Notes under the pieces: model-generated
What the model saw: the letters and a program-made list of their open reading frames with translations, nothing else
What the model was told of the DNA's origin: nothing
The model's database searches: none
Translations under genes and position numbers: made by a program
In this document: in pieces, positions 21,441 to 64,000 of the stretch
Numbering within the stretch: the stretch's first letter is position 1
Layout of the letters: every line of letters starts with the position of its first letter
Source: Mobula hypostoma
Taxonomy: Eukaryota
DNA length: 64,000 nucleotides
Reading direction: 5' to 3'
Assembly (NCBI RefSeq): GCF_963921235.1
Contig: NW_026948187.1
Coordinates: forward strand, 5,890,001 to 5,954,000

Positions 21441-21444
21441 GAGG

Positions 21445-22790: not shown

Positions 22791-22821
22791 GAAACTGATT
22801 AAAATATATTAAATTTCACAG

Positions 22822-23456: not shown

Positions 23457-23631
23457 GAAAGCGGCCTCTCATGTCTTGTACGTGACGATGTCTGGAAAGG
23501 TCGAATGCATTGAATGTAAATCGTCCAGCGTGGGTTACCCTTGCAATCGTAAACAACACCGTTTCATCTGCGAGGCGGCTGCACCTTTCCACCCGGATAT
23601 TCCCGAAGAGATCCAGGATCTCCGTCCGTAG
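23457..23631 (+). pseudogene. Paralog A CTLD exon 3 (KAASHVLYVTMSGKVECIECKSSSVGYPCNRKQHRFICEAAAPFHPDIPEEIQDLRP*)
   Basis: tgatag acceptor; homolog of 33502-33700. Confidence 0.85.
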
Positions 23632-33501: not shown

Positions 33502-33700
33502 TCACTTGATTCCTGTCGCCTCCATTGGCTGTTGACAGAGATCCTGAATATTTTCAGGAATATCCGGGAACAAAGGTGCCAACTTCTCGCAGATGAAACG
33601 CCGAGCACGATTGCAAGAATTCCTCCCTGGATACGAGCGGCAGTCTCCGCAGTCTGACGTCCCCGAGGACACCTTGTACAGGAGATCCCAGTCTACATTC
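33502..33700 (-). CDS. Gene B exon 9, CTLD exon 3 plus C-terminal tail (NVDWDLLYKVSSGTSDCGDCRSYPGRNSCNRARRFICEKLAPLFPDIPENIQDLCQQPMEATGIK*)
   Basis: ggatag acceptor, C..FICEK motif, TGA stop at 33502-33504. Confidence 0.88.
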
Positions 33701-36700
33701 CTATCCAAGAGGGTTAACAATTTTAACAGAGACAAAGCAGCTCCAGCAGAGAACCCGAACCGAGACCATCCACAAGCCAATCTCATGAAATCGCGCTCTC
33801 CTGTCAGCCTCTGTCAGTGACTCAACCAGCTCATCCACTCTCTCCCCACAGCTCCGTGCCAGCACCCAGAGAGATACCACGTTCCCAATGTCTCCCGACA
33901 ATCAATTGTCAGTTCCCAACTAATGGCACTAACCCCATGTCTATGCACCGTCGCGTGTCTCCCCAAACTATTAGGACCGAACCGCTTTCTCACCACATTG
34001 CTCTGACGGTCCCCATTTGAATCGAACAGCCCCATCCTCTCCCTTCCGATCTGTTTCACTCCCCGAACAAACCCCACTGTCCCACCGTCTCCGCACAGAC
34101 TTGTGGCTGTCCCGAAATGAATCACGCGTCCACACTCCTGCCTCATCCCTGTGTCGTTCGCAGATTAATCCTGTTTCCCATCACTGTTTCCAGAGCTTCG
34201 TCTCAGCCTCCGAACATATCGCTGTACACCCCGCTTTCACCATAGACTCTGGTCCGCCTCCAGACTTATACCACTGGCTCCCTCTCTCCCACATCCGTGC
34301 GTCAGTTCGCAAATTAATCCCATTAACCCACTGTGTGGTCACCGCCCTGTATCGGTCTCCAAACTACTCCAGTTGTCCTACTCTCGCCCCTCAGATCTAT
34401 GTCATTCACCAAACAAATGCCGCTGTTGCTCCCTCTCCTCACAGCCCGGCGACTATCTCCAAAATAATCCCACTCCACCGCGCTCTCCTCACCGACATGC
34501 GTCAGTACCAAAATAAAATAATCCCTGTGTACTGATCTCTCCCCACTGCCCCCTGGCAGTTTCCGAAATATTCCCACTGCCCTGTCCTTCCCCGACAGAC
34601 ATGTGCCGGCCTCAAAATGTTCCCCTTGTACCACACTCTCCCGACAACCACGTACAGTTTCATCGTAAACTAATCCCATGTTCTCCCTTCAGGACTATGT
34701 CAATGCCCAACTCTCACACACAGATCAGTCCAAATCTCACCCGTCTTCGCATTTTCCAATCCAGTATGCACCGTTTCGGTGCACAAGTTTGTGGGATACA
34801 AAGCTCTGTGAAATTAAATTTATTTGATTAATGCCAAGAATCGAAAACTATGTACGGAGTTTCTCTTAGTTGATTACAACATGAATCTGTGATTGGACGG
34901 TGTGGAGGGAGCTTCACTGATTGCCATATCATGTGAATGTATCATGGGACGGTGTGTAGGAAGATTCACTCTGTGTCTGACCCCGAGAAGGTGTGCTAGG
35001 AGTGTATTGTGGGAATAACTCCGTGGCTAAACCTGGGGGACTGATGGGACGGTGTGGAGGGAGATAACTCTATGTCTGAACCCGAGAATGTGTCCTGGGA
35101 GTGTAGTATGGGTGTCACTCTGTGTCTCACCCCGGAAGTGTCTGATGATTCTTGCGAGATCTTCTTGTGATGTGACACATACCGCTTCATCTCTTGAATT
35201 GATTTCAAGCAGCCTTGCATCACGGTTTGAACATTCTCGCATCGCTGTGTAGAAAGATGTTTCAAACGTGGATACGTAATAACACCGGTCTTTATTTGTG
35301 ATCCAGTCCTTGGAACAGGTATGCTCTGGAAATAGGAATAAGGAGTAGTGAATATCACTCCACACCGTCCCATCGCGCACATAGGGGTGAGAGATAGAGT
35401 GAATCTCCCTCCATTCCGTCCCATCTAACACCACAAGGGATCAGTCCCTTCTACCATCATCAATGATGCCCTCACCCGCATCTCCTGCATTCCCGGACTT
35501 CAGCCCTCACCCCATCTTCCCGTCACCACAACAGGGACAGAGACCCCCTTGTCTTCACCGTCCACCCCACCGGACTTCGGATCCAGCACCTTATCCTCCG
35601 CAACTTCAGCCAAATTCAACAGGACCCACTAGGAAACACATCTTTCACTCTCTCCTCCTCTCCGCTTTCCGAAGGGATCGTTACCTCGGCGACTCCCTAG
35701 TCTACACGTCCCTCCCCACGGAGCAGGTCCTGAACAGTGAGTACAGAGAGCTTGGTCGGAAGTTAAACAGCAGGACCTCGTGGATGGTAATCTCAGGATT
35801 GACACCTGTGCCACATGCCAGTGACGGTAAGAATAGGATGCTCTGGCGGATAAACACGTGGCTGAGAACTGGTGTAGTGGGTAGAGTTTCAGATATCAGG
35901 ATCTTTGGGACCTTTTCTGCGGCAGGTGTGACCTGTACAAGAGACGGGTTACACCTGAACTACAGGGGGACCAATATTCTTGCTGGGAAATTTGTCTGTA
36001 CTATTGTGGAGGCTTAAACTAAATCTGCAGGGGGATGGGGATGGTAACCAGAGTGCCAGAGCAGATAGTGGAGCGGGGGTGAAAATAATTGGTGTTAAAA
36101 GTTCATGAAAAGTCACAAACAGAAGGGTTATGTGTGGTTGTAATAATCATCTGATGTGTTCTCTATTTCAAAGCGAGAAGTATTGTGGGGAAGACTGACG
36201 AGCTGAGGGCGTGGATTGACACATGGAATTACGACATAATATCAATTTGTGAAACTTGGCTACAGGAGGGGCAGGACTGGCAGCTTAATGTTCTAGGGTT
36301 CCGATGTTTCAGACGTGATAGAGGCAGAGGAATGAAGGGAAGCGGGTGCGGCATTGCTGGTCAGGGAAAATCTCACAGCAGTGCTCCGGCAGGACAGATC
36401 AGAGGGCTTGTCTACCGAGGCCTTATGGGTGGAGCTGAAAGACACGAAAGGTATGACCATATTAATGGGGTTGTATTATAGACCATCCAATTGTCAGCGA
36501 GAATGGGAGGAGCAAATCTCCAAAGAGATAGCAGACAACTGCAAGAAACATGAAGTTGTGATAGCAGGGGATTTTAGTTTTCCACATATTGATTGTGACT
36601 TCCATACTGTTAAAGGTCTAGACGGGTTAGAGCTTGTAAAATGCGTTCAGAAAGGTTTTCTAAATCAATATTTAGAGCTACCAACCAGAGACGATATAAT

Positions 36701-45700: not shown

Positions 45701-48700
45701 CATTACACACTCCCGGGGTCAGTCAGAGACGCTCTCTCTCTCTGCGATCCCATCACTCACTCCCGGATTGAGTCACAGAGTGAAGCCCCCTCTGCAACGT
45801 CCCATTACACACTCCGGGAGTCAGAAACAGACGAAAACACTCCCTCCACGTTCTCATCACACAACACACTCCCTGATTCAGTCACTGAGTGAAGCCCCCT
45901 CTGCAACATCCCGTCACGCTCTCCCGGATTCAGAGTGATAATCTCTCTCCAGGGAGCCATAACACCATGGATTCAGGCGTGGGGTGAAGCTCTCTGGGCA
46001 CTGTCACATCACACTATCCCACTGTCAGACACAAAGTGAAACCTCCTCCACAACGTCCCACCGCACACTCGTGGGTTCGGTGCTAGAGTGCAACTCCTTC
46101 GCGTAGCCCCATCACACACTCACCGAGTCAGACACTTAGTGAATCTCCCGCTATACCATCTCTTCACACACTCTCTATGTTAAGCACAGAGTGACGCTTC
46201 CTCTCACCGTGCCTGCTCGGTCATGAGGAGCGGGTTAAAGAGGGGGATAATGCCTCACCTCTTCTGCTGGTCAACAATTCACAGATCTGAGCTTTGGTTT
46301 CGTTGACAGATCTGTACTTCGTTTGCATCTCAGTGAACTGGTGACGGAGATCAGCGTGCGTTCGGTTAAGATCGATCAGCTCTGAGTTGAGCGCAGATAG
46401 ATTCTTGAGACAGGTTCTCTGAGAGAGATTCAGGTGGGAAGTTAACTCACGATGGTTTCGGTCAGAGGTGATCATAGACTGACGAATCTGTGATACTGAG
46501 AGAGATGGTGAAAGATATTTAGCGTTTACAGTGACACGGGAGTCAGCGTCACGCTACCGAACGGGTCACAGAGAGTGTTGTGTCAGTGTCACGGTGAAGG
46601 GTGTCACAGCGATGGATCTGCTGGTGGCACAGTGAGAGGCGTTGGCGCCACCTTGCGGTTCGTGTCTGTGTCACGCTGAGCTGTTTATAAATTTCCCGGT
46701 GAAGGTGTTATTGTTACAACGGGGTCCGCATCAGTATCGTACAGGGCATGTCCGTGTTGCTGTGTGGTACGTGCCTGTGTCACTGTGATAGGTGTTTTTG
46801 TGCGCCGGCGAGAGGTGTACCGAGTTACTGTGTCTCACTGCGAGAGAACTGTCAGAGTGAGAGACCTGGTGTTGTCACGCTGGGTAGAGTGCCTGTGTCA
46901 TGGTGTTGGGTGTGCCGATCTCACAGAGAGGTGTGTGTCTGTGTCGACCTTGGAGACATATCATGGCCACGGTGTGTGTGACAGTGTCATGCTGAGGTGT
47001 TTGCAGATGTCACCGAGACTTCTATGTCGGCGACACTGTGAAATTAGGTGTTGGTATCACGGTGAGTGGTTTGTCTGTGTCAGAGTTGGGTGCATCGGTG
47101 TTATTTTGAGGGGTTATACCATATCGGTAAGGGGTGTTACAGTGGGTGCGAGCTTTGTCACGGTGCGGAGCTGGACGGGTCACGTTGAGGAACGTGTAGG
47201 TGTCACGGAGTACGGTGCCTCAGTGTCACGGTGAAGGACATGTCGGACTCACTGTGAGGTGTGTTTCGGTGTCGCCTTGGGGAGTGTATCAGTTACACTG
47301 GCAGGGTCATGTCGATGTTAAATTGAGTGGTCCATTTCTGCGTCACGGTGACGCGCGTGTCCCTGTCTCGGTTCAGAGTGCAACTGTGTCACGTTGAACG
47401 TCGTGTTCGTGCGACGGTGACAGGATTATTGGTGTTCTGCTATGTAGCGAGTCGGTGTTTGGATGACTCCTGATTGTGTTACTGTAAAGGCCGTGTCTTT
47501 GTCACGGTTAGGGATGTGTCCGTGGTGAAAAGTTTTTTTTGTCCATGTTACAGTAAGGGGCGTGTCTGTGTCACTGTAGCGTTTTACAATAACAATTTGT
47601 TCCACTCTCTTTATTTGCGGTCTGACTCCACCCGGAGGGCGTTCGACTCACCATGGATCGAGAGCCCGGCCACAATCACGACAAGGCTGGACGTAACTAG
47701 GCAGAGTAGGTAGATCTTACGGTGCGGTCTATTTCCGATGTTCTCTTTTGGTTCCTGTTCGTGCGCACCTGTAGAGAGAGCACAAGACCATAAGACATAG
47801 GAGCAGAAGTACGCCATTCGGCCGATCGAGTTTGCCTTCTCCTCTACCGTTTGAAGTTCGTTTCTCTGACAGAAAGCCCGTCACTAACGGTGTTCACCGG
47901 GGTCGAGGGTGGGACCAGTGATCTTTATCAATTATATCGACTATTTGTAGTAGATTATATAAGTCGCGGTTGGTAAGCCTGCTGACAACACTAACGTCGG
48001 TGCCGAGGTAAACAGTGAAGACATTTACCGCTTACACTGGGATCTCGATTAGCTGGGGAAGAGAGCAGAGCAGTAGCAAATGCGATTTATTTCTCATAAG
48101 AGCGAGCTATAGTAATTCAGAAAGGGAAACAAGGGTACAATGTTCAGAGTGTTCGGGAGAAACCCTGGCGTGTGTTGAATAACAGTGGGACCAAGGGCCC
48201 CACATCCAACGTTCCTAGAGCGTGAAGTGACCGGTGGAGGGATCGGTGAAGGTGTCTGACGCCCCGGCCTTCATCAATCAAGGCACTGAGTACAGGATTA
48301 AGGGGTCACGTTGCAGCTGGACAAGACGTCGGTGAGGCCGCCCTTGGAGTACGGTGTTTAGTTTTGGTCGCCCTGCTATAGGACAGATGTCAATGAGCTG
48401 GACAGATTGCAGAGGGAGATTTACGACGATATTGCCGGGGATCGAGGGATTCAGTTACGGAGATAAGTCGAGCAGGTCGGGACATTAATGCTTGGAGCGC
48501 ACGGGTGACCTTACAGGGGTGTAAACAAACACGTGGGTACACAGACAAGGTGAATGCGTACTGTCATTTTCTTTAAACTTGGAGAACCGTGGACCGGAGC
48601 GCACATGTCTGAGATGATAGCAGAAAGAGATTTAAACTGGGGCACGAGTGACGACTTCCTTTTTTAACCCAGACGGCGTTCCGTATAAGGAACGAGCTGC

Positions 48701-51700
48701 CAGAGGAACTGATGGATGCCGATGCATTAGGACTTGAATTGTCGGGCGTATGGCACGTGACCACTTCAGACTGACGTCATTACTGTGAACTCTGACCTCC
48801 TTGTGCAGTCACTGGCATTTCGGCGGGTGCCGAGGTAATGGGAGGATCTTCATAATCATCGATGAGAATTTCGTCTTTCCGAAGGTTCAGCATTGAGTAG
48901 GTGGATGTGACACCGTCTGGGAAGAAAGAAAGATAATGTGAGAGACAAAGATATAGAAGGAGGAGGAATGGTTACTTCGAGTGCCAGGATTTAGATGCTT
49001 CAGAAAGGACAGGGAAAGAGGCAAAAGAGGTGGAACCTTTGATCAGAGATAGTGTCACAGCTACAGAAGAGCAGGAAGACAAGCAGGAATTGTTTATACC
49101 AAGGGGCTGGAGACTACCAAGACAGTATATGAGGTGTTACTACTCCAAACTTGTCCCTACACCCCATCTCTTGCAACCATTCAGGGCTCCAAATAGGCCT
49201 TCCAGGTGAAACAACACTTCACTTGTCAGTCTGTTGGGGTCGACTATTGCATCCGGTACTCCCGGTGCGACCTCATCTACATCGGTGAAACCCGACGCAG
49301 ATTGGGGGACCACTTCGTCGAGCACCTCCACTCCGTCCGCCACAACAGACATGATCTCCCGGTAGCCACCCACTTCAACTCTGTTTCCCACTCCCATTCA
49401 GATATGTTCATTCATGGCCTCCTCTACCGTTATGATGAGACTAAACTCAGGTTGGAGGAGCAACACCTCATATACCGTCTAGGTAGTCCCCAGTTTCTTG
49501 GTATGAACATAGAATTCTCCAACTTCCGGTAATTCCCTCCCGCTCCCTTCCTCTATCCCTATTTCACTCTACCCCCTACCCCAGCTCCCTTATGGTTCCG
49601 CCTCCTTCTTCTACCACCCATTTATTCAGGGCTATGAAGTCACTGCTTCCGCTCCCCCACCTCTTTGTCTTTCAAATTACTGGTCTTTCAACTGAAGCTA
49701 CAAGCATTCTTCAAATCCTTCCCCATCTTTCATTCTTCAGACCTGACGAAGGGTTCCGGTCCGAAACGTCGACTCATCGTTTCTGACTGATGCTGCCCGA
49801 CCTGCTGAGTTCATCCAGCGTACACACAGGAGATTAGTGTGCAAAATTAAAGCACACGGTATTGGGGGTAAGGTATTGATGTGGATGGAAAATTGGTTAG
49901 CAGACAGGAAGCAAAGAGTTAGAATAAACGGGACCTTTTCAGAATGGCAGGCGGTGACTAGTGGGGTACCGCAAGGCTCAGTGCTGGGACCCCAGTTGTT
50001 TACAATATATATTAATGATTTGGATGAGGGAATTAAATGCAGCATCTCCAAGTTTGCGGATGACACGAAGCTGGGTGGCAGTGCTAGCTGTGAGGAGGAT
50101 GGTAAGATTATGCAGAGTGACTTGGATATGTTGGGTGAGTGGGCAAATTCATGGCAGATGAAATTTAATGTGGATATATGTGAAGTTATCCACTTTGGTG
50201 GCAAAAGTAGGAAAACAGATTATTATCTGAATGGTGGCCGATTAGGAAAAGGGGAGGTGCAACGAGACCTGGATGTCATTATACACCAGTCATTGAAAGT
50301 GGGCATGCAGGTACAGCAGGCGGTGAAAAAGGCGAATGGTATGCTGGCATTTATAGCGAGAGGATTCGAGTACAGGAGCAGGGAGGTACTACTGCAGTTG
50401 TACAAGGCCTTGGTGAGACCACACCTGGAGTATTGTGTGCAGTTTTGGTCCCCTAATCTGAGGAAAGACATACTTGCCATAGAGGGAGTACAAAGAAGGT
50501 TCACCAGATTGATTCCTGGGATGGCAGGACTTTCATATGAAGAAAGACTGGATGAACTGGGCTTGTACTCGTTGGAATTTAGAAGATTGAGGGGCGATCT
50601 GATTGAAACGTATAAAATCCTAAAGGAATTGGACAGGCTAGATGCAGGAAGGTTGTTTCCGATGTCGGGGAAGTCCCGAACAAGGGGTCACAGTTTGAGG
50701 ATAAAGGGGAAGCCTTTTAGGACCGTGATTAGGAAAAAACTTCTTCACACAGAGAGTGGTGAATCTGTGGAATTCTCTGCCACGGGAAACAGTTGAGGCC
50801 AGTTCATTGGCTATATTTAAGAGGGAGTTAGATATAGCCCTTGTGGCTACGGGGATCAGGGGGTATGGAGGGATGGCTGGGGTGGGGTTCTGAGTTGGAT
50901 GATCAGCCATGATCATAATTAATGGAGGTGCAGGCTCGAAGGGCCGAATGGCCTACTCCTGCACCTATTTTCTATGTTTCTATGTTTCTATGTACTGAAA
51001 GTGTTGCTTCTATAACTCTATAGGGTGTTCTTTCTTTGTTTTTTTGTTTTTTTTATGTAGACGGCCCAATAGTAACAAGGACATCGAGGGGCAGATAGGG
51101 GGATAGATTATGGAGAGGTGTAATAATAGCAGTGTTATCGTAGTGGGAGATTTAATTTCTCAATTATCGATAGGCATGCCCTAAGATTGAATGGTTCAGA
51201 TGGGAGAGAGTTCAGTAGGTGTGCTTAAAAAGATTTCTTGAAACAACATGTTGATAAGCCTTCAAGAGGTGAGGCTGTACTTAAACTGGTATTGGAAAAT
51301 GAACCTGGTCAGATGCCAGGTCTCTCAGTAGGAAAGCATTTTGGAGGTAGTGATCACAATTCTATCTCCTTTACAATAGCATTAGAAGGGAATAGGAAAG
51401 CGTTTAATTGGAGGAGGGAGAAATATGAGGCTATCAGGCAGAAAATTGGAAGCTTAAATTGGGAACAGCGTTTCTCAGGGAAATCTACGGAAGAAATGTG
51501 GCAAATGTGAAGAGATACTTGATTGGGTTTTGCGTAGATAGGTTCCAATGAGACAGGGAAAGGATAGTAGCAGCAGGAACAGGGGTGCACAAAGGCTGTT
51601 ATAACTCTATTCAAGAAGAAAAGAAGATGTTACCATAGATTAAAAAAAAACTAGGTAATGATAGAGATCGAGAAGATTATAAGGCTATCAGGAAGGAACT

Positions 51701-54700
51701 TAGGAAATGAATTTGGAGAGCTAGAAGGGACCATGAAAAGGCTTTGGTGGACAGAATTAAGGAAAACCCCAAGGCAGTCTTGAAGAAGTGAAGAGTAAGA
51801 GGTTTAGACGTGAGAGAATAGAACCAAGCAAGTGTGAAACTGGATAGGTGTGCATGGAACCAGAGGAGATAGCAAAGATACTTATTTCATACATTGCTTC
51901 AGTATTCACTACGGAAAAGGACCTTGGCGATCGTAGGGATAACCTACAGCAGACTTGAGCATTTAGATATTATAAAAGAGGATGGGAAACACTTTTTGGA
52001 AAACAACGAGTTAGTAAAGTCACTGGGACAGGAGGAGATGTACCCTAGGCTACTGCGGGAGGCGAGGGAGGAGACTGTTGAGTCTCTGGCAATCATCTGT
52101 ATATCATCCATGGGGACGGGAGAGGTTCAGGAGGATTGGGGGTTTGCGGATGTTGCTTCCTTTTTCGTTAACCCAGGAAAACATAGACCAGTGGGCCTTA
52201 CTTCGGTGTTTGGTTAATTGATGGAGCAGATCCTGAGAGGAAGGATTTATGAACATTTGGAGAGGCATAATGTGATTAGGAATAGTCTGCATGGCTTTGT
52301 CAAAGGCAAGTTGTGCCTTACGTGCCTGATTGAATTTTAGTGAGGTTGTCACTAATCACATTGCTGAAGGAGCATGAGTAGATGTAGTGTATATGGATTT
52401 CGGCATGGCATTTGACAAGGTGCCCAATGCAAGGCTTCTTTAGCAAGTAAGGAGACATAGGATCGAAGGGTGCATTGCTTTGTGGATCCAGAAATAGCTT
52501 TCTCACAAAAAGCAAAGTGTTGTTGTAGAGGGTCATATTCCGCATGGAGGTCGGTGACCAGTGGTGTGCCTTAGGGATCTGTTCTATGACCCCTGCAGTT
52601 TGTGATTTTTTTAATAAATGACCTGCATGAAGAAGTAGATTGATGGGTTAGTAAGTTGGTTGATAATACAAAGGTTGGCTGTCTTCTGGGTAGTGTGCAG
52701 GGCTGTCAGAGTTTACAACGGGACATCGATAGAATGAAAAATTGGGCTGAAAAGTGGCAGATTCAGTTCAACCCAGATAAGTGTGAGGTGGTTCATTTTG
52801 GTAAGTCAAAACTGAATGCAGATTATAATATTAATGGTAACACACTTGGCAGTGTGGAGGATCAGAGGGATCTTGGGGTCCGAGTCCACAGGAAACTCAA
52901 AGCTCCAACGCGGGTGGACTTTGTGGTTAAGAAAGCATATTGTCCTTTTTCAATGGTGGGATTGAGTTTAGGAGCCGAGAGGTAAGGTAGCAGCTATATA
53001 GGATCCTGGTCAGACCCCACTTGGAGTACTGTGCTCAGTTCTGGTCGCCTCACTACAGGAAGGATGTGGAAACCTTAGACATGTTGCAGAGGATATTTAC
53101 AGGGATGTTGCCTGGTTTGGAGTGAAAGCCTTAATGGAATAGGTTGAGTTAACTCGGCCTTTTTTGCTTGAAGCGACGGAGGATGAGAGGTGACCTGATA
53201 GAGGTGTATAAGATGATGAGAGGCATTGATCGTGTTTATAGTCAGAGGGTTATTTATTTTTTTTCTAGAGCTAAAATAGCTAGCACGAGGGAGCACAGTT
53301 TTAAGGTGCTTGGAAGCAGGAACAAAGGAGATGTCAGGGGTAAGTTTTTTTACGCAGCGAGTGTTGAGTGCGTGGAATGGGCTGGTGGCGACGGTGGTGG
53401 AGGCGGATATAGAGGGTATTTTAAGAGACTCCTGGACAGGTACAAGGAGCTCATAAATAGAGGTCTATGGGTAACCCTAGTTAATTTCCAAGATAACGAC
53501 ATGTTCGTCACGGCTTTGTGGGTCGATGGGCCTGTATTGTGCATTAGGTTTCTATGTTTCTTTGTTTCTGTTATAAGAGGTAAGGTTACAAGAGGAAGAG
53601 CGCTAAGGTAATGTAATGGTTAGCACACCGCTCTGCAGTATCAGCGACCCGGATTCAATTCCGGCCGCTGGATGGAAGGATTCTGTACGTTCTCCCCGTG
53701 ACCGCGAACGTGTCGTCCACGTGATCCAATTTCCTCCCACCGTCAGCAGACACACCAGCTGGTAGGTTAGTTGGCCAAATTAAATGGAGGAATGTCCGCA
53801 CCGTTTTTCAAAAGGTAAGCAAATCTAATTTTTCTTTAAAGATGAATCTCAAGGTTGTTTCTGGTATCAATATACAGCGGGCCTTCTGGAGTTTGAAATG
53901 TGTAGGACTGATATGAATGAAAATGTAGATGGATGGGTTGATAGTTTTGCAGACGACAAAAAGAGCGGTGATGTTGTGGAGAGAGTAATACAGAGAACAT
54001 AGAACATAGAATAGTACAGAACATTACAGGCCCTTCGGCCCACAATGACGTGCCGACCCTCAAACCCTGCCTCCCATATAACACCCACACCTGAAATTCC
54101 TCCATATATCTGTCTATTAGTCTCTTAAACTTCACTTGTGTATCTGCCTCCACCACTGACTCAGGCAGTGCATTCCACGCACCAGCCACTCTCAGAGTAA
54201 AAAAAACCTTCCTCTAATATCCCCCTTGAACTTCTCACCGCTTACGTTAAAGCCATGTCATTTATATTGAGCAGCGGTGCCCTGGGGAAGAGGCGCTGGC
54301 TATCCACTCTATCTATTCCTCTTATTATCTTGTACACCTCTATCATGTCTCTTCTCATCCTCCTTCTCTCCAAAGAGTAAAGCCCTAGCTCCCTTAATCT
54401 GTGATCATAATGCGTACTCTCTAAACCAGGCAGCATTCTGGTAAATCTCCACTGTACCCTTTCCAATGCTTCCACATCCTTCCTATAGTGAGGTGACCAG
54501 AACTGGACACAATACTCCAAGTGTGGTCTAACCAGAGTTTTATAGAGCTGCATCATTACATCGCGACTCTTAAACTCCATCCCCCGACTTAGGAAAGCTA
54601 ACACCCCATAAGCTTTCTTAACTACCCTATCCACATGTGAGGCAACTTTCAGGGATCTGTGGACATGTACCCCCAAATCCCTCTGCTCCTCCACACTACC

Positions 54701-57700
54701 AAGTATCCTGCCATTTACTTTGTACTCTGCCTTGGAGTTTGTCCTTCAAAAGTGTACCACCTCACACTTCCGCCACCTCCAACGGGATCCCACCACTAAG
54801 CATATCTTTCCCTCCCCGCCTCTCTCTGCATTCCGCAGGGATCGCTCCCTACACAACTCCCTTGTCCATTCGTCCCCCCGCCCCCCATCCCTCTCCACTG
54901 ATCTCCCTGCTGGCACTTATCCGTGTAAGCGGAACAAGTGCTACACATGCCCTTACACTTCCTCCCTTACCACCATTCAGGGCCCCAAACAGTCCTTCCA
55001 GGTGAGGCATCACTTCACCTGTGAGTCGACTGGGGTGATATACTGCGTCCGGTGCTCCCGATGTGGCCTTTTATATATTGGTGAGACCCGACGCAGACTG
55101 GGAGACCGCTTTGCTGAACATCTACGCTCTGTCCGCCAGAGAAAGCAGGATCTCCCAGTGGCCACACATTTTAATTCCACATGCCATTCCCATTCTGACA
55201 TGTCTATCCAATGCCTCCTCTACTGTAAAGATGAAGCCACACTCAGGTTGGAGGAACAACACCTTATATTCCGTCTGGGTAGCCTACAACCTGATGGCAT
55301 GAACATTGACTTCTCTAACTTCCGCTAGGCCCCACCTCCCCCTCGTACCCCATCTGTTACTCTTTTTAATGCACACATTCTTTCTCTCACTCTACTTTTT
55401 CTCCCTCTGTCCCTCTGAATATACCTCTTGCCCATCCTCTGTGTCACCCCCCCCCCCCGTCTTTCTTCCCGGACCTCCTGTCCCATGATCCTCTCGTATC
55501 CCCTTCTGCCTATCACCTGTCCAGCTCTCGGCTCCATCCCTCCCCCTCCTGTCTTCTCCTATCATTTTGCATCTCCCCCTCCCCCTCCAGCTTTCAAATC
55601 CCTTACTCACTCTTCCTTCAGTTAGTCCTGACGAAGGGTCTCGGCCTGAAACGTCGACTGCGCCTCTTCCTATAGATGCTGCCTGGCCTGCTGCGTTCAC
55701 CAGCAACTTTGGTGTATGTTGCTTGAATTTCCAGCATCTGCAGAATTCCTGTTGTTTGTGTTGTCCACCTCACACTTCTCCGGGTTGAACTCCATCTGCC
55801 ACTTCTCAGCCCACTTCTGCATCCTATCAATGTCTCTCTGCAATCTTTGAAAATCCTCTACACTATCTACAACACCGCCAACCTTTGTGTCGTCTGCAAA
55901 CTTGCCAACCCAGCCTTCTACCTCCACATCCAGGTCGTTAATAAAAATCAAGAAAAGTAGAGGTCCCAGAACAGATCCTTGTGGGACACCACTGGTCACA
56001 ATCCTCCAATCTGAATGTACTCCTTCCACCACCACCCTCTGCCTTCTGCACGCAAGCCAATTCTGAATCCACCTGTCCAAACTTCCCGGGATCCCATGCC
56101 TTCTGACTTTCTGAATAAGCCTACCATGTGGAGCCTTTCAAGTGACTTCCGGAAGTCAATATATATCACATCCACTGAACTACTCTCATCTATATGCCTG
56201 GTCACCCCATCAAAGAACTATATCAGGCTTGTTAAAAACGATCTGCCCTTCACAGAGCCATGCTGACTGTCTCTGATCAGACCATGCTTCTCTAAATGCC
56301 CAGAGATCCTAACTCTAAGAATCTTTTTCCAACAGCTTTCCCACCACAGACGTAAGGCTCACTAGTCTATAATTACCCTGGCTATCCCTACTGACTTTTT
56401 TGAACAAGGGGACAACATTTGCCTCCCTCCAATCCTCCGGTACCATTCACGTGGACAAGAGGACATAAAGATCCTAGCTCTGCCTCAGAGGGCAGTGGAG
56501 GCCAATTCTCTGGATTCTTTCAAGAAAGAGGTAGATCGATCTCTTAAAGTTAGCGGAGTCAAGGGATATGGGGAGAAGGCAGGAAAAGGTTACTGATTGT
56601 GGATGATCAGCCATTATCACAGTGAATAGCGGTGCTGACTCGAAGGGATGAATGGCCTAATCCTGTACCTATTGTCTGTTGTGCATTAGACCACCCATCG
56701 ACATTTGTATTCAGATCATTTGTATATATGACAAAAAGGAGACGTCCCAGTGGAATGTCATAGATACAGATCACATCATAGTAGTAAAAGAGGTAAAAGA
56801 ATAACAGAATGCAGAGTAAAGTGTCACAGTTACAGATAAAGTGCAGTGCAGGTGGATATGAATATTCAAGGGGACACGACGTAGTAGACGGTGATGTCTG
56901 GAGTGCATTATCGTCCTCGGGGACCGTTGCATAGTCTGATAAACGCGGGCAGAAACTGCCTTTGAGTCTGGCGAGGCTTGGTTTCGTATCTTCCCCCGAT
57001 GTGGGAGGGTATGGGTGGGGAGTGGGTGTCGTAAGAACATCGTCCAGGGTGAGTCGGAGTTTTTATTACGGTGACTGCTTCAGCGATGCAGCGGGAAGGG
57101 TGGATGGAGACCTTGGAGGTGAGGCTGCCTGATCTGCACGATTCAAGCTGACTGAGAACAAAGTGCCATAAATGACAGATTGTCACTTGCTGGAAAGAGG
57201 ACAATCAATGGAGCAGAGACACTTAAAACGTGTTAAATATCAGGAGCCGAGTAACAACCTTTTGTTACCCCGATGGCGGTCAGTCAGTGGCACAAGCTGC
57301 CAGAGGTAGTGGCCGAGGCAGATGCATTAGAAACTTGGACACTTGGGAGTATGACACGTGATCTCTTTAGTGTCGGTACTGTGAACTCTAACCTGTTCGT
57401 GCAGTGACTCGCAGTTCGCCGGGTCCCGAGGCAACGGGGGGATCCTCATCCTCATCGATGAGGGTTTCGTCTTTCCCAAAGTTCAGCTCTGAGTAGGTGG
57501 AGGTCAGCCGGTCTGGGGAAGAAAGAGGAGAGGATGAGAGAGAGATTTAGGAGGACAGACCAGTAAAGCATGGTGGAGGGGTGAGGACAGAGAAACGGAG
57601 CAGAGATGCGGGAAGATAGAGTGCGGAAAGAGACGGCTGAGTGGTAGGTATTGAAGGTGAGAGAGAGATGGAAGTGAGGGGGAAGAGTCGAGGAGCCAGA

Positions 57701-59470
57701 GCAGGAGAGTGAGGATGGAAAGGATGAATGGAGTGGGGAGAGATGAGTGAGCGGTTGGAGCGATGGGCGAGAAAATGGGATTGAATGGGGGAGAGAGAAC
57801 GGTGACAGAAAGGAGAAAGACGGAGAGAGGGAGGGAGAAAAGGGAGCGAGAGATGCGTAGGCGAGTGGCAGGGGTGAGAACATCAGCGAAGGAGAAGGTA
57901 AGGGAGTGGGATTGAGAGGGGGATTTGGGACGCTCAGGGGTGCGAGACAATTGGAGCGAAAGAGAAAGGGGACAGTTTAAAGATAAAGGGTTAAGAGGCA
58001 GTGGAGAGCGTGAGGGAGAGAGTGACGGGGTGAATACAGAGAGGAAGAGGGTGTGGATGGGGAGTTGCTCGGAAGATTGGGTCACAGGGAGATGGGGTGT
58101 ACGGGGAATTAGACAGAGATAGGAGGGAGCGAAAGTGGCGGGGAGAAGTGAGCGCAGTGATGGAAAGAGTGCGCGAGAAGAACGAGAGCGGTAGAGAGGG
58201 GCGATATGAAAGAGACTGTGGAAAAGGGGAGAGTGGTGAAAGAGAGTTAGATGGAGAGGAAATGGCAATGGAGACAGCGCGAAGCGTAGAAGGGTAGAAA
58301 CAGTGATAAGGGTAGGGAAAGGGGAGAGAGTGAGGGTAAGAGAAAGAATTAGTGGGCCAGAGAAGAAGAAAAGAAGGTGAGAGCGGATTAGCGTGTGAGA
58401 GATAGGGGGAGAAAGAAGGAGGCAGGGGGAAGAGAGTAGAAACGACGAGAGAGTAGGGTTAGAACACGAAGAGAGTTGTTCACATTTTATAGAGTTCCCT
58501 TTCCTCACTGCCTCTTTCTACTCTCCTCCCTCCTCGCCACCCCTCCCAAGGTGTTTCCTACTCACCGGCCATACCGCAACACTCCCTGCTCTCACTCCAC
58601 GCCCAACCCCCACCACACAGCGCCCCTCCTCAGTGCCCCCAATTTAACACCCTCTCACGGTTCTCCCACCACACCACAAATCCCGTGGCGTTCTCTGCAC
58701 TGACCCCACCCAGAGCAATCTGCTCATCCCTTTCCACAACCCTCCCTCTATGCTCTGCCTCACCCCGCCCCTTCCCAGAGCGCTCCCTCCTCACCGACCC
58801 TCCCATAGAGCTCGTATCTCACCGCCTCCCGCACGCATTGCTTCTGACTTATTCTCAAACAGAGAATCATTAGTGTCAACTGCACCCGTGCCACGAGGTT
58901 TCTCCACAGGAATGGACACATCAGATGAACAAAGTCAAACCAACAAAATGAAACTGACCTTCATCTGTCCGGGGAACGGAGAGGCATTTGATATTCGGTT
59001 CTGCGTACGATACATCAGGTTCAGCTGGGGACAGAAAAGTGAGAGTCTGAAACAGGGTGAGGCTCCCTCCACACTGCCCCGTCAGAAACTCCCGGGGTCA
59101 GACACAGAGTCAAGCTCACTCCATCCCGTTCCATTACCCACTCCCTGGGTCGGCAACAAAGTGAATCTCCCTCCACACCATCCCATCACAAAGACACGGG
59201 ATGAGACACAGAGTGAAGCTCCCTCCCCACCGTTCCATCACACACTCCCGGAGCCAGACACAAAGAGTCTCTCCATCCACCCCGTCCCATCACACACTCC
59301 AATTGTCAGACACTGAGTGTCGCTCCCTCCTCCCCGTCCCGTTACACACTCCAGGGGACAGAAAGAGATTGAAACTCTCTCCTTCCGTCACGGCCCCACT
59401 CACTTCTCGTTGGAAACCGTGAGTCTGGTTTGACGAGCTGAACATTCGCATAAGTCTGGCTGTCCTCCAT
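33502..59470 (-). CDS. Gene B: intact-looking type II TM C-type-lectin-like (NKC/KLR/CLEC-like) inhibitory receptor; join(59470-59404,59024-58959,57512-57393,48916-48797,47768-47652,46495-46259,35325-35183,34805-34741,33700-33502), 377 aa
   Basis: All nine exons have GT/AG boundaries and compatible phases; 67+66+120+120+117+237+143+65+199=1134 nt with no internal stop. Cytoplasmic / TM / neck / three-CTLD-exon layout is that of NK-complex genes. Motifs CSKDW..RCYY, LLEINSRDEA, YWIG, FICEK. Confidence 0.85.
34741..34805 (-). CDS. Gene B exon 8, CTLD exon 2 (SFVSHKLVHRNGAYWIGKCEDG)
   Basis: tttcacag acceptor, gtgaga donor, 65 nt, WIG motif; same size as paralog exon 22822-22886. Confidence 0.88.
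35183..35325 (-). CDS. Gene B exon 7, CTLD exon 1 (EHTCSKDWITNKDRCYYVSTFETSFYTAMRECSNRDARLLEINSRDEA)
   Basis: Classic CTLD N-terminal motif C-x3-W-x6-CYY...C...LLxI; AG/GT boundaries, 143 nt. Confidence 0.92.
35450..35720 (+). mobile_element. Penelope-like fragment
   Basis: HIF..LLLSAFRRDRYLGDSLV matches 54771-55328. Confidence 0.75.
35720..39042 (+). mobile_element. Near-full-length degenerate CR1 (ORF1 end plus ORF2 EN-RT)
   Basis: VISGLTPVP; ICETWL; VIAGDFSFP; KAFDKVPH; tttctatg tail. Confidence 0.92.
39075..39307. mobile_element. Tc1/mariner terminal remnant
   Basis: Reverse complement of the end, CAGTGCATTGCAAAAGTTTGGGCATCCC, resembles a Tc1 TIR. Confidence 0.55.
39308..40730 (-). repeat. 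Degenerate 52-bp minisatellite including a homogenised 49-bp variant (~39490-39790)
   Basis: aacagacac recurs at 39512, 39561, 39610, 39659. Confidence 0.85.
40935..41500 (+). mobile_element. Penelope-like element 3' part (GIY-YIG C-terminus plus pLTR tail)
   Basis: LPVATHFNS..LRLEEKHLIYRLGSLQPLGMNIEF. Confidence 0.85.
41381..41416 (+). ncRNA. Hammerhead ribozyme motif (degenerate stem II) in a Penelope pLTR
   Basis: AGTCCTGATGAAGGGATCCGCTCCGAAACGTCGAC. Confidence 0.55.
41505..44852 (+). mobile_element. CR1 ORF2 (degenerate) with a nested CR1 3' fragment at 41701-42312
   Basis: NARSIRNK endonuclease start; RPHLEYCVQF; two tttctatg tails. Confidence 0.9.
44855..46205 (-). repeat. Degenerate 52-bp minisatellite in the neck-CTLD intron of gene B
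   Basis: Visible array. Confidence 0.85.
46259..46495 (-). CDS. Gene B exon 6, coiled-coil neck/stalk
   Basis: 237 nt, phase 1-1, open; heptad-like Leu pattern, two Cys, N-glycosylation sequons NLS, NLS, NRT, NET. Confidence 0.88.
46520..47600 (-). repeat. Degenerate ~20-bp (CCGTGACACCGACAC-like) tandem repeat in the TM-neck intron; homologous arrays at 17590-17940 and 19305-19660 in paralog A
   Basis: Repeated gtgtcacggtg / caccgtgacac motifs in the same intron of both paralogs. Confidence 0.75.
47652..47768 (-). CDS. Gene B exon 5, transmembrane (AHEQEPKENIGNRPHRKIYLLCLVTSSLVVIVAGLSIH)
   Basis: ctctctacag acceptor, gtgagt donor, 117 nt; basic residues then an uncharged hydrophobic segment (type II anchor). 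Confidence 0.9.
47930..48720 (+). mobile_element. Old CR1 RT fragment
   Basis: Degenerate VRPPLEYGV.FWSP. Confidence 0.6.
48797..48916 (-). CDS. Gene B exon 4, ITIM exon copy 2 (GVTSTYSMLNLRKDEILIDDYEDPPITSAPAEMPVTAQG)
   Basis: Acceptor ctttcttcccag, donor gtcaga, 120 nt phase 1-1, ITIM STYSML; homologous to 57393-57512 including flanking intron. Confidence 0.8.
48968..53570 (+). mobile_element. Older CR1 ORF2 interrupted by a Penelope element (49095-49821) and a younger CR1 (49822-50992)
   Basis: Endonuclease sequence at 48968-49094 resumes at ~50993; ORF 49837-50796 is an open RT C-half (GVPQGSVLGP, KFADDTK). Confidence 0.88.
49739..49774 (+). ncRNA. Hammerhead ribozyme motif in a Penelope pLTR
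   Basis: AGACCTGACGAAGGGTTCCGGTCCGAAACGTCGACT. Confidence 0.55.
53598..53785 (+). mobile_element. tRNA-derived V-SINE (HE1-like)
   Basis: A-box-like gtaatggttagc, B-box ggattcaattcc, V-domain tgtacgttctccccgtgaccgcg...tttcctcccac. Confidence 0.75.
54771..55764 (+). mobile_element. Penelope-like element (open GIY-YIG endonuclease domain) with 14-bp TSD
   Basis: VIYCVRCSRCGLLYIGETRRRLGDRFAEH; TSD CCACCTCACACTTC at 54757-54770 and 55765-55778. Confidence 0.92.
55624..55659 (+). ncRNA. Minimal type I hammerhead ribozyme motif in a Penelope pLTR
   Basis: AGTC-CTGACGA-AGGGTCTCGGCCT-GAAAC-GTC-GACT; stem I AGTC/GACT, palindromic stem III. Confidence 0.7.
57393..57512 (-). CDS. Gene B exon 3, ITIM exon copy 1 (RLTSTYSELNFGKDETLIDEDEDPPVASGPGELRVTART)
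   Basis: Acceptor ctttcttccccag, donor gttaga, 120 nt phase 1-1, canonical ITIM STYSEL. Confidence 0.8.
57520..58470. repeat. GA-rich low-complexity intron (polypyrimidine on the gene B sense strand)
   Basis: Strong purine/pyrimidine strand bias. Confidence 0.8.
58959..59024 (-). CDS. Gene B exon 2 (EPDVSYAEPNIKCLSVPRTDE), degenerate ITIM VSYAEP
   Basis: Acceptor tctgtccccag, donor gtcagt, 66 nt, phase 1-1; same acceptor and EPDV start at 14267 in paralog A. Confidence 0.75.
59404..59470 (-). CDS. Gene B exon 1 (MEDSQTYANVQLVKPDSRFPTR)
   Basis: ATG at 59470, donor GTGAGT; same 67-nt length as paralogous exons at 11193 and 13375. Confidence 0.85.
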
Positions 59471-60830
59471 GCTGTCTCCGATTCTCGGCGTCTCTGAGCT
59501 CAGCGAGGGGATGTGACCGATATCAGAGGCAGCCCCTGTTGACAGCGGAGTCAGACCGACAGAAACAAACACCGGATGAGCAGCTGATAAAGAGAGGAGC
59601 CGAGAGCAGGGGAGGAAGTGCTGGGGAAGAGGGAGATTCAGGGTGTGAGAAGGGGTGGTCTGGAGCGATGGGAGTGGCCGGGGGTAGAGTAGTGAGACTG
59701 GGCAGATACAGAGGGAGGGGAGAGTGAGGGGAAGGTTAGGGCTTGGCGGAAAGAGAGACGTTGGATACAGGGGTCAGAAAGGGAGAGCGGAATGAAAGAA
59801 GGGGAGGGCGAGAAGTGGGAGAGAACGGGGAGAGAATTTAGAGTAGAGAGTGAGAAAACAGAGGGCGAGCTAACGGGGGAAAGCAGGAGAACGAGAAACG
59901 AAAAGGGAGGGGCGGAGGAAGAGGGAGGAGAGATACAGGGAAGGGGCGATTGTGGGGGAAGGAATAAGGAAGTTGGAAGGATATAGGAAGAGAAGGAAGG
60001 AGAGAGAATACAATGGAAAAAGGGGAAGAGTGGGGGAAAACGAGTGAAGAGGGAGGGAGAGACGGACGGGTATGTTGTCTCTCACGCAGAGCCTTTATTG
60101 TCGGAGAGATTTACAACGAACACCAGCCCCCTCTCCCGCTAACCCCAACCTCCAGGTGATTCCTGGTTTGAGTGTCAGCGCTCCCATTGCTCTGCTTATC
60201 GCTGGGGCTTCAGACCGTCTGTGCTCTGGAAACCACGGCCCCGGGACAAACACGCTACACCCACCGAAGTAAGCGAGCCCCCTCCCTCCGAGAATACGTC
60301 AGAGCAATAGATTGCCATTTTAGATTGTGTAACACTTATGAAAGAAAGCGGACATTTAGATCTTGAAGGTCACAGGAAACCAGCGCAGGCTGATCGGTAT
60401 CTGCAGTTTGAATCTCTTCACCCATTGGAGGATAAGCCGGGGGTTGTCAGTGTCAGTGTTTCAGAGAAGTATTGAAAGCTTGCTGCTGCACTGAGTGAGC
60501 TAAATACACAGCTAGAAATAAAAATAGCAAGGACCTCAGCCCAACAGACAGAGTTCAGGAGCTATCTCAAAAACCCTCCATCACTTCCTGTCTGTAATTT
60601 TCTCTCTCTGCGTCCCTCACTCTCCCCTCACTATCTCTCTATTTCTCTCCCAGGAATACCTCCAACCCGCTTCAATTTCGCTACTCTCTGCAACTCTCTC
60701 ATTTTCCTCTTACCCCGCTCCCTCCTCTGCCGTTCTATCTCACTGCTCTCCTCACGAAGACTTCTTTTTATTCTCCCCACGCTTTCTACCCTACGAGAGA
60801 GAGTCAACGTACCTTGTTCCTATTTTCCAG

Positions 60831-60903
60831 CAGGCGATGCGGCGAAACAGCATTTTTACACTCTGATTCAAAGCGTCTGGAAATAAATTCAGAAGTGGAA
60901 GAG
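60831..60903 (+). pseudogene. Orphan degenerate CTLD exon 1 remnant
   Basis: Acceptor cttgttcctattttccag as in A/B; residual HSDSKRLEINSEVEE; internal deletion and donor mutated to ttatgt. Confidence 0.65.
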
Positions 60904-60949
60904 TTATGTGTCAGATACACAGAAGATATATCCACACCGGACTGAATAT

Positions 60950-62740
60950 CCATCCACGCTCTCCCATCACACACTCCCTTGATCAAACACAGAGTGAATC
61001 TCCCTCCACAAAGCCCCATCACACACTCCCGTGATCAAACACAGAATGGAATTCGCTCCACACCGTCCTAGCACACACGCCCGGGGTCAGACACAGAGTG
61101 AAACTCCCTCCACACCGTCCCATCACACACTCCCTTGATCAAACACAGAGTGAAATTCCCTCCACGCCGTCCCAGCACACACTCCCGGGGTCAGACACAG
61201 AGTGAATCTCCATCCACACCCTCCTATCACAAGCTACCGGGGTCAGAGACAGAGAGAATCTCCTTCCACGCCGTCCCATCACACACTCCCGTGATCAGAT
61301 GCAGAGTGAAACTCACTCCACACCGGCCCATCACAGACTCCGAGGGTCAGACACAACGTGATAAACCCTCCACACCGTCCCAGCACAGAGGCTCGTGAAC
61401 AAACACAGAGTGAAGCTCCCTCCACACTGTCCCGTCACACACGCCCGGTGTCAGACACATGGTGAAGCCCCCTCCACACCGTTCCAGAACACACTCCCGT
61501 GATCAAACTCAGAGTGAAACTCCCTCCACACCGTCCCAGCACACACGCCCGGGGTCGGACATAGAGTAAATCTCCATCCACACTGTCCCATCACAAACTA
61601 CCGAAGTCAGAAACAGAGTGAAACTCCCTCCACGCCGTCCCATCACACACTCCCGTGATCAGACGCAGAGTGAAACTCCCTCCACACCGTCCCATCACAC
61701 ACTCCGAGGGTCAGACACAAAGTGATAAACCATCCACACCATCTCAGCACAGACACTCTTGAACAAACACAGAGTGAAGCTCCCTCCACACCGTCCCGTC
61801 ACACACGCCCAGTGTCAGACACATGGTGAAGCCCCCTCCACACCGTTGGTGTCAGATCTGCTGTCTTTCACCCGATATCGATCTCTCATTTCTCAGCTTC
61901 TCTGCGTCTCTGTGTGCACAGGATTATCGTGTGGTTTCACATCACTTCCTCCCAGTGCTGCAAACCCACCACCTCTTCACAGCCCTACGTCTCCTCCTGC
62001 TCCCTCCACAGTTCTACATTTGATCACAAACACAGATTATCTCTGAGACAGGCACACAATTAGAGACTACAGGGACGCTGAAGTGATGCTGAGTGCTGGG
62101 GAGGGAGAGAGGGAGTAAAGAGGGAGATAGGTTCTGTTTCTGAATCTGTTGGTGTATAATGGGACTGTCAGGAGGGAGCTTCACTCTGTAACACCCACAA
62201 CACGCTGGGGGAACTCAGCAATTCGGGCAGCATCCGTGGAACGGTCAGTCAACCTTTCGGGCCGGAACCCTTCCAGCGAGTTCCTCCAGCGTGTTGTAAG
62301 TGTCGTTTTCACCGCAGCATTTGCAGATTATTTTGTGTTTAAACTTTACGGTGTGTCTGACTCCGGGTGTTTGTGATAAGACGGTGCGCGGGAGTTTTTC
62401 TCTGTTTCGGACCCTGTGGAATCTGTGATCGGACGGTGTAGTGAGAGTTTCACTCTGTGTCTGACCCCGGGAGTGTGTGATGGGACGCTGTGGAGAGAGA
62501 TTCACTCTGCGTCTGACCCCGGGAGTGTGTGATGGGACGGTGTGGTGGGAGATTCACTCTGTGTCTGACATTGGAGTGTGTGATGGGACGGTGTGGAGAG
62601 AGATTCACTCTGTGTCTGACCACGGGAGTGTGTGATGGGACGGTGTGGAGGGAGATTCACTCTGTGTCTGACCACGGGAGTGTGTGATGGGACGGTGTGG
62701 AGGGAGATTCACTCTGTGTCTGACCCCGGGAGTGTGTGAT
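60950..62740. repeat. Inverted 52-bp minisatellite arms (60950-61845 C-rich; 62350-62740 G-rich)
   Basis: Visible arrays. Confidence 0.9.
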
Positions 62741-63988
62741 TTCAGTGTGTCAGTGTTCAGGCGAGCTGGAGAGAGTAGCGAAATTGAAGCCGGTTGGAGG
62801 CATTAATGGGAAACAAATAGAGAGATAGTGAGGGGAGAGTCAGGGACGCAGAGAGAGAAAATAATTGACAGAAGCTGATGGAGAGATTTCGAGAGAGCTC
62901 CTGAACTCTGTCTGTTGGGCTGAGGTCCCTGCTATTTTTATTTCTTGCTGTGTATATAGCTCAGTCAGTGCAGTAGCAAGCTTTCAATACTTCTCTGAAA
63001 CAGTGACACTGACAACCCCCGGCTTATCCTCCAATGGGTGAAGAGATTCAAACCGCAGATACCGATCAGCCTGCGCTGGTTTCCTGTGACCTTCAATATC
63101 TCAATGTATGATTTCTTTCATAAGTGTTACACAATCTAAAATGGCAATCTATTGCTCTGACGTATTCTCGGGGGCGGGGGGGTGCTCTTGCTAACTTAGG
63201 TGGGTGTAGCGTGTTTGTCCCGGGGCCGTGGTTTCTAGAGCACAGAGGATCTGAAGCCCCAGCGATAAGCAGAGCAATGGGAGCGCTAACACTCAAACCA
63301 GGAATCACCTGGTTGGGGTTCGTGGGAGAGGGGGCTGGTGTTCGTTGTAAATCTCTCCGACAATAAAGGCTCTGCGTGAGAGACAACATACCCGTCCGTC
63401 TCTACCTCCCTCTTCACTCGTTTTCCCCCACTCTTCCCCTTCTTCCGTTCTTTTCTCTCCCCTTTCTTCTCTTCCTATATGCTTCCAACTTCCACATCCC
63501 TTCTCCCTCAATCGTCCCTTCCCTGCATCTCCCCTCCCTCTTCCTCCGCCCGTATCTTTTCGTTTCTCTTTCTCCTGCTTTCCTCCTTTAGCTCGCCCTC
63601 TGTTTACTCACTCGCTACTCTAAATTCTCTCCCCATTCTCTCCCACGTCTCGCCCTCCCTTCTTTCATTTCGCTCCCCCTTTCTGACCCCTGTATCCCAC
63701 GTCTCTCATTCCGCCAAGCCCTATCCTCCCCCCACTCTCCCCTCCCTCTGTATCTCCCTACTCTCACTACTCTTCCCCCGGCCACTCTCATCGCTCCAGA
63801 CCACCCCTTCTCACACCCTGAATCTCCCTGTTCCCCAGCATTTCCTCCCCTGCTCTCGGCTCCTCTCTTTATCAGCTGCTCATCCGGTGTTTGTTTCTGT
63901 CGGTCTGACTCCGCTGTCAACACGGGCTTCCTCTGACAACGGTCACATCCCCTCGCTGAGCTCAGAGACGCCGAGAATCGGAGACAGC

Positions 63989-64000
63989 ATGGAGGACAGC
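63989..64000 (+). CDS. Start of paralog C exon 1 (MEDS...), continues beyond the window
   Basis: ATGGAGGACAGC and ~1.2 kb upstream are an inverted copy of the gene B start. Confidence 0.7.

Follow-up and report, generated by a model that had tools for sequence, protein, structure and literature searches.

Duplicated ITIM cassette exons in the predicted inhibitory tail of a lectin-like receptor gene of Mobula hypostoma

A stretch of 64,000 nt from Mobula hypostoma, the lesser devil ray (Myliobatiformes; RefSeq assembly GCF_963921235.1, contig NW_026948187.1, positions 5,890,001 to 5,954,000 of the forward strand) was analyzed; the whole of it is called the window here, and positions are counted from its first letter. 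The minus strand of the window carries a nine-exon gene for a type II lectin-like receptor. Two of the exons that encode its cytoplasmic tail are duplicated 120-nt cassettes, and each of them supplies one inhibitory motif of the immunoreceptor tyrosine-based type (ITIM). The explanation as a whole (a nine-exon receptor gene with duplicated ITIM cassette exons, an inhibitory tail, and gain and loss of cassettes throughout the family) was judged to be probably correct. For this gene itself, the likeliest reading of the predicted product is a constitutive inhibitory receptor with two ITIMs.

Gene structure

The exons of the gene, in the order of transcription, are as follows; CTLD denotes the C-type lectin-like domain.

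59404..59470, minus strand: exon 1, coding part (e1); ATG at 59470; 67 nt, i.e. 22 codons plus 1 base; residues 1–22
58959..59024, minus strand: exon 2 (e2); 66 nt, phase 1-1; motif VSYAEP; donor AAG/GTCAGT
57393..57512, minus strand: exon 3 (e3); 120 nt, phase 1-1; 40-aa cassette; STYSEL (Y51); weak donor CAG/GTTAGA
48797..48916, minus strand: exon 4 (e4); 120 nt, phase 1-1; duplicate cassette; STYSML (Y91) and Y106; weak donor GAG/GTCAGA
47652..47768, minus strand: transmembrane (TM) exon; 117 nt, phase 1-1
46259..46495, minus strand: neck (stalk) exon; 237 nt, phase 1-1; 79 aa
35183..35325, minus strand: CTLD exon 1
34741..34805, minus strand: CTLD exon 2; includes WIGK
33502..33700, minus strand: CTLD exon 3; stop codon at 33504–33502

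These nine exons join into a single open reading frame (ORF) of 377 codons plus a stop. The spliced protein was 100% identical (377/377 aa) to the annotated protein P0049, which is RefSeq XP_062895678.1, labeled “oxidized low-density lipoprotein receptor 1-like” from Mobula hypostoma. The gene model, all four tail exons included, is already in RefSeq, and the e1–e4 region is the 5′ half of one nine-exon receptor gene. A first-pass annotation of the window had given coordinates, lengths, phases, and motifs for exons 1–4, and all of these proved exact on the minus strand.

The tail exons have polypyrimidine-AG acceptors and GT donors. The first of them, e1, ends in phase 1 at a consensus donor (GAA/GTGAGT). 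Exons e2, e3, and e4 as well as the TM and neck exons are all of phase 1-1 with lengths divisible by 3; hence e2–e4 can be removed in frame, as had been proposed. A pyrimidine occupies position +3 in the donors of e2, e3, and e4 (GTCAGT, GTTAGA, and GTCAGA, respectively); the donors of e1, the TM exon, and the neck exon are GTGAGT, GTGAGT, and GTGAGG. The GTY donors of e2–e4 would fit regulated exons and are no proof of them. In this gene, regulated skipping of e3 and e4, both of which have GTY AGA donors, is possible.

The intron separating e3 from e4 is 8.5 kb long. Its length, along with three M. birostris variants (P0159, P0208, and P0207) that start inside or just before e4, speaks for a reading in which e1–e3 and the exons from e4 onward are fragments of two genes, or in which one of the cassettes is a stitched-in pseudo-exon; the former case (exons 1–3 and 4–9 as two fragments) had been raised in the first-pass annotation. 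However, one frame runs through all nine exons and yields the RefSeq protein, and no CTLD exons lie between e3 and e4. Furthermore, the annotations of four genes from two species (P0049, its M. birostris ortholog P0058, and a paralog in each species, P0051 and P0059) show the order e1-e2-e3-e4-TM, and P0207 itself, an annotated M. birostris model, joins e3 sequence to e4. Separate fragments or a pseudo-exon were considered very improbable.

Two sequencing runs of uncertain type contained about 0.10 of the sampled words of 57300–59600 and 46200–49000, which is approximately the exonic share. This was taken as a hint of expression only, suggestive and not evidence.

Receptor class

Pfam Lectin_C matched residues 265–351 of the protein at 31.1 bits (cut-off 22.6); Pfam searches with the peptides of single exons gave nothing useful. 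A motif scan for CTLD signatures of the WIGL/WxWxDG type found none, the CTLD being atypical in its WIGK and its short loop; the domain was located instead via the ORF listing and homologs. It is split over three exons, as in type II receptors of group V/II, the natural killer (NK)-complex kind. At E ≤ 0.01, 112 CTLD chains in the PDB were matched, the best being CLEC9A (E = 3.7e-10), KLRB1 (E ~ 4e-8), and CLEC4A; LOX-1 chains matched at E ~ 7e-7.

The best hydrophobic window covers residues 143–161 (a span of 19–21 aa) and is preceded by the basic sequence N-R-P-H-R-K. The span itself (I-Y-L-L-C-L-V-T-S-S-L-V-V-I-V-A-G-L-S) contains no D, E, K, or R, i.e. no charge for pairing with adaptors that bear an immunoreceptor tyrosine-based activation motif (ITAM). 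There is no signal-peptide exon, and the TM span is that of a type II signal anchor. On the basis of the Lectin_C domain, the solved relatives, and the uncharged TM span after a basic stretch, the protein was therefore assigned to the type II lectin-like receptors of the NK-complex kind.

The CTLD (33502–35325, minus strand) is unusually compact, having WIGK for WIGL and being short where the long loop would be. Members of the ray family share a conserved C-terminal motif, F-P-D-I-P-E-x-I-Q-D-L-C.

Orthology to LOX-1/OLR1 was considered and found no support: LOX-1 is not the closest CTLD family (CLEC9A, Ly75, KLRB1, CLEC4A, NKG2D, KLRF2, CLEC12A, CD69, and Dectin-1 are ahead of it among the solved relatives). 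The LOX-1 name is best read as an automatic similarity label only.

Tail motifs

The cytoplasmic tail comprises 142 aa from four small exons and contains five tyrosines: Y7 (QTYANV) in e1, Y29 (VSYAEP) in e2, Y51 (STYSEL) in e3, and both Y91 (STYSML) and Y106 (DDYEDPP) in e4. The ITIM consensus used was (I/V/L/S)-x-Y-x-x-(L/V/I), and only Y51 and Y91 conform to it. The other three deviate, with Q at −2 of Y7, P at +3 of Y29, and the sequence YEDP at Y106. By this consensus, the predicted ITIM count of the protein is two, not four. It had been proposed that every tail exon carries its own tyrosine motif, which is correct; only those of e3 and e4 are ITIMs.

In each 40-aa cassette, the ITIM (S-T-Y-S-x-L) is accompanied by an acidic run and by a linker rich in Pro and Gly; the module is probably disordered. 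The motif of e1 is of the Y-x-N-V type and not an ITIM; we take YANV to be a motif of the Grb2 SH2 type, as in CD72. At the position of e2, relatives have classical NK-complex ITIMs (VSYAEL, VSYVAI, and VLYADV). In this gene and its M. birostris ortholog, the +3 residue there is Pro (VSYAEP and VSYAKP, respectively), and in the paralog P0051 the tyrosine is lost (VSDAEP). The V-x-Y-x-x-P of e2 reads as a degenerate form of the ITIM that the relatives carry there. The remaining tyrosines (Y7, Y51, Y91, and Y106) are invariant in the four Mobula proteins P0049, P0051, P0058, and P0059.

A hemITAM or ITAM reading of the tail was rejected: no acidic triplet directly precedes any YxxL, and Y91 and Y106 form YSML...YEDP, not YxxL-x(6-12)-YxxL.

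Duplication of the cassette exon

Exons e3 and e4 had been described as duplicates with homologous intron flanks at 57300–57390 and 48700–48796. This was borne out, and the duplication is slightly wider: the exons and their flanks aligned in blastn over 307 nt at 74.9% identity (E = 3.6e-52), with 57555–57248 matched to 48961–48645. Beside each 120-nt exon, it takes in 43 nt on the upstream side and about 145 nt on the downstream side. The downstream flanks are:

57248..57392, minus strand: intron flank 3′ of e3; homologous to 48645–48796, 76%
48645..48796, minus strand: intron flank 3′ of e4; duplicate of 57248–57392

The exon copies agree at 95/120 positions, the downstream flanks at 109/144, and the upstream flanks at 35/41. 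About 7 insertion or deletion (indel) events were counted in the approximately 195 nt of flank. Scaled to the exon, that rate predicts about 4, and 0 were seen; the reading frame of both copies has therefore been protected. Instead of being neutral intron, the conserved flank 3′ of e3 may be an alternative extension of the exon.

Three annotated M. birostris variants touch these exons. P0207 runs from within e3 through the donor into the flank and then splices to e4; its donor matches a site at ~57266. It maps colinearly to 57264–57455 (minus strand) of the window, and there is a stop in that frame in M. hypostoma. P0159 and P0208 begin at a Met inside the ITIM of e4 (S-I-Y-S-M-L becoming M-L...); their product would carry no ITIM tyrosine, only that of YEDP.

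Cassette number and isoforms in the family

A HMMER search with the last exon revealed a family of proteins sharing the same C-terminus, and a profile search then yielded 381 proteins at E ≤ 1e-10. The family matches were all from four Myliobatiformes: M. hypostoma, M. birostris, Hemitrygon akajei, and Hypanus sabinus. For a census of cassettes, a hidden Markov model of the 40-aa cassette was run on 157 annotated family proteins, with the following outcome.

0 cassette copies: 33 proteins
1 cassette copy: 69 proteins
2 cassette copies: 29 proteins
3 cassette copies: 21 proteins
4 cassette copies: 4 proteins
6 cassette copies: 1 protein

The proposal that cassette number is tuned by exon duplication is supported by this range of 0 to 6 per protein, and the comparison of ITIM exon number among paralogs, which had been suggested as a check, showed a mostly exact 40-aa period. 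A length of exactly 40 aa was found in 263/332 cassette matches, the usual places being 23–62, 63–102, 103–142, and onward; a short form of the cassette (~21–23 aa) is also present in the family. Of 206 unique cassettes whose motif could be read, 190 (92%) keep the tyrosine, and 16 have D, F, N, or C in its place. The pattern [SIVL]xYxx[LVI] fits 149/206, and the others mostly have P, C, or A at −2. STYSEL, STYSML, SIYSML, and SIYSEL are among the ray cassette motifs, with STYS in most of the 206.

For three M. birostris genes, as many as 16 isoforms are annotated, the lengths of which step by 40 aa. Written as strings of cassettes, these isoform sets contain ABCsD, ABCD, ACsD, ABsD, ABC, AsD, and ABs, and they read as the combinatorial inclusion of whole cassettes. 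The NCBI pipeline normally makes alternative isoforms only from transcript alignments. The suggestion that ITIM number is also tuned by alternative splicing stood in part: whole-cassette isoforms occur in these three genes, but no cassette-skipping isoform is annotated for the present gene or for its M. birostris ortholog. At the level of the family, exon duplication and in-frame skipping are supported by the annotated sequences.

The M. birostris ortholog (P0058) has 377 aa and is 85% identical to the M. hypostoma protein. Between the two, e3 is identical at 33/40 residues and e4 at 38/40, which falls within the range of the CTLD exons (80–90% identical). In a close M. birostris relative, P0064 (335 aa), the e3-type cassette is present and the e4-type cassette is absent.

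Competing readings

Several results weigh against the proposed combination of an inhibitory tail with cassette-wise tuning. The motif S-x-Y-x-x-L also fits the Y-x-x-hydrophobic endocytosis signal. No transcript-derived (Logan) proteins with this tail were found, the matches all being RefSeq models, and the absence of an annotated skipping isoform for this gene or its ortholog has been mentioned. Finally, the exon copies e3 and e4 have diverged as much as their flanks. Between e3 and e4, the synonymous divergence (dS) is 0.28 and the nonsynonymous divergence (dN) 0.24, compared with a flank distance of 0.29. The dN/dS ratio is ~0.9 overall; taken alone, the motif half gives ~0.5 and the linker half 1.4 (few sites). 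Given this ratio and the equality of exon and flank divergence, most of the cassette is therefore weakly constrained; the near-neutral divergence also means that the duplication is old. What has clearly been kept between e3 and e4 is, by this comparison, limited to the frame, the splice sites, and the core of the motif.

The main rival takes up the first of these points. It holds that the cassettes are mainly endocytic or sorting modules, in which YSEL or YSML serves as the adaptor signal next to an acidic cluster and copy number tunes ligand uptake or routing. The ITIM and Y-x-x-hydrophobic endocytic motif classes overlap. Every cassette couples Y-x-x-L with an acidic run (e.g. I-D-E-D-E-D-P-P), and several members of the family have been named by NCBI as asialoglycoprotein receptor 1-like, CD209-like, or LOX-1-like. 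Nevertheless, the Ser at −2 and the Thr at −1 (STYS) are strongly kept, although a plain Y-x-x-hydrophobic signal does not need them, and the cassette motif matches the ITIM of MAFA, SIYSTL (PMC3061320). The homologs of exon 2 (VSYAEL, VLYADV) are classical NK-complex ITIMs as well, and the family tail is therefore ITIM-rich. A mainly endocytic role was deemed unlikely.

The second rival is neutral churn, in which copy-number variation results from neutral unequal crossing-over in a rapidly expanding gene cluster rich in repeats, the cassettes are constitutive here, and the isoforms of the relatives are splicing noise or products of the pipeline and have no regulatory role. The e3/e4 divergence just described is as this reading would have it, as are the loss of the tyrosine from 16/206 cassettes, the missing skipping isoform, and a window full of satellites and paralog relics. 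It has to contend with the retention of that tyrosine in 92% of cassettes, with the 95% identity of e4 between the two Mobula species, with an exon that has no frame-breaking indels beside flanks with about 7 events, and with the same combinatorial isoform pattern in three paralogous genes. On these grounds it was rated improbable, and the duplicated-ITIM reading was retained.

Neighboring genes and other features

The window contains a local cluster of paralogs. The features assigned outside the nine exons and their flanks are:

63836..64000, plus strand: start of the head-to-head paralog P0051 (LOC134341561); predicted ATG at ~63989
11193–23655, plus strand: second family gene; exon-1-like at 11193 and 13375, exon-2-like at 14223, TM at 17395–17562, neck at 19618, CTLD at 22205–23655
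60813..60953, minus strand: candidate alternative first exon; counterpart of the N-terminal extension in isoform X1 (P0158) of M. birostris

The segment 63836–64000 (plus strand) is a 97% nucleotide copy of the promoter, 5′ untranslated region (5′UTR), and first codons of the nine-exon gene (59623–59459, minus strand), and the ATGs of these head-to-head paralogs are 4.5 kb apart. The tail exons of the two paralogs are 98–99% identical within each Mobula species and 85–87% identical between species. The CTLDs, on the other hand, are 42% identical between the paralogs and 84–86% identical between orthologs. This pattern looks like gene conversion confined to the signaling half.

The other plus-strand paralog (~11.2–23.7 kb) is without a cassette; apparent stops were seen near its CTLD exons.

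Upstream of e1, the 5′UTR is open in frame with the ATG from 59623. Read on the plus strand, 60811–60996 resembles a decayed relic of CTLD exon 1, and the upstream exon at 60813–60953 seems to be antisense to this lectin-exon fossil. Satellite arrays with a period of ~52 nt are located at about 100–4200, 11300–11900, and 61000–62800, and are scattered elsewhere; the satellite translates as V-C-D-G-T-V-W-R-E-I-H-S-V-S-D-P and gives rise to many spurious protein matches.

Proposed mechanism

Cassettes would be gained and lost through unequal recombination in the flanking introns, and skipping would remove them at the level of RNA. Gain, loss, or skipping of a cassette would leave the TM span, the neck, and the lectin domain in frame because every cassette is symmetric in phase 1. 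Upon ligand binding, Src-family kinases would phosphorylate the cassette tyrosines, and the phosphorylated cassettes would recruit SH2-containing phosphatases (SHP-1/SHP-2 or SHIP). Two ITIMs 40 residues apart could bind a tandem-SH2 phosphatase bivalently, and cassette copy number would then set inhibitory strength.

A broader idea, put forward tentatively and held to be rather doubtful, is that of an “ITIM rheostat” of stingrays and devil rays, in which 0–6 cassettes are stacked by duplication and chosen by splicing, with the tails kept alike by conversion. If it were true, one gene could give rise to receptors of graded inhibitory valency, and would do so in a type II lectin-like receptor family with several hundred members; conversion would keep the signaling tails of neighboring paralogs identical while their lectin domains diverge.

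Comparison with known systems

In mammals, the tails of lectin-like receptors of the NK complex are short and carry a fixed set of one or two ITIMs; accounts of how their inhibitory strength is set usually turn on expression level and affinity for the ligand. NKG2A and CD72 are two-ITIM type II lectin-like receptors whose motifs are ~30–40 residues apart in the N-terminal tail; CD72 pairs an ITIM with a Y-x-N-V motif. Both proteins resemble the ray receptor in having two tyrosine motifs in the N-terminal tail, and the Y-x-N-V of CD72 is like the YANV of e1. Unlike the ray cassettes, the mammalian motifs do not lie on cassette exons that have been duplicated, and they do not vary in number. Only one member of the family bears the NCBI name “CD72-like”. 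LOX-1/OLR1 is similar in being a type II protein with a coiled-coil neck and a CTLD; mammalian LOX-1 is not known to have an ITIM tail.

KLRG1/MAFA is likewise of type II, with one C-terminal CTLD and a cytoplasmic ITIM (SIYSTL in MAFA) that has Ser at Y−2, as do the ray cassettes (PMC3061320). The differences are that MAFA has a short tail with one ITIM, whereas the tail encoded by the ray gene is 142 aa long and contains two ITIM cassettes and three other tyrosines, and that in relatives of the ray gene the cassettes, encoded by one exon apiece, number up to six. In addition, the CTLD of KLRG1 is not among the closest solved relatives of the ray CTLD.

PECAM-1 (CD31) offers a precedent for a signaling motif on a skippable exon. 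Its tail is encoded by several small, alternatively spliced exons, and when exon 14, which bears an ITIM tyrosine, is skipped, binding of SHP-2 is lost (PMC5664058). In contrast to the ray gene, PECAM-1 is a type I protein of the immunoglobulin (Ig) superfamily, and its tail exons are not tandem duplicates and are constant in number among paralogs. In the FcoR/FF allorecognition system of Botryllus, which is a large polymorphic family, the tail's ITIMs and hemITAMs are exchanged through alternative splicing and through changes between alleles (PMC12582321). Those proteins, however, are type I with Ig/Sushi domains, and the change is brought about by intron retention and new stop codons, not by in-frame stackable cassettes.

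Literature searches on cartilaginous-fish lectin receptors with ITIMs, on Mobula lectins, and on ITIM exon duplication found no prior description. What sets the ray system apart is a uniform, tandem-duplicated ITIM cassette exon in a lectin receptor of the NK-complex type, present in 0–6 copies throughout a very large family and with annotated combinatorial isoforms. If functional, this arrangement would provide a natural dose series for ITIM valency and a simple genetic tuning of inhibition, in parallel to the exon-14 switch of PECAM-1. It would also give a handle on the evolution of NK-like receptors in elasmobranchs, in which such receptors have been little described.

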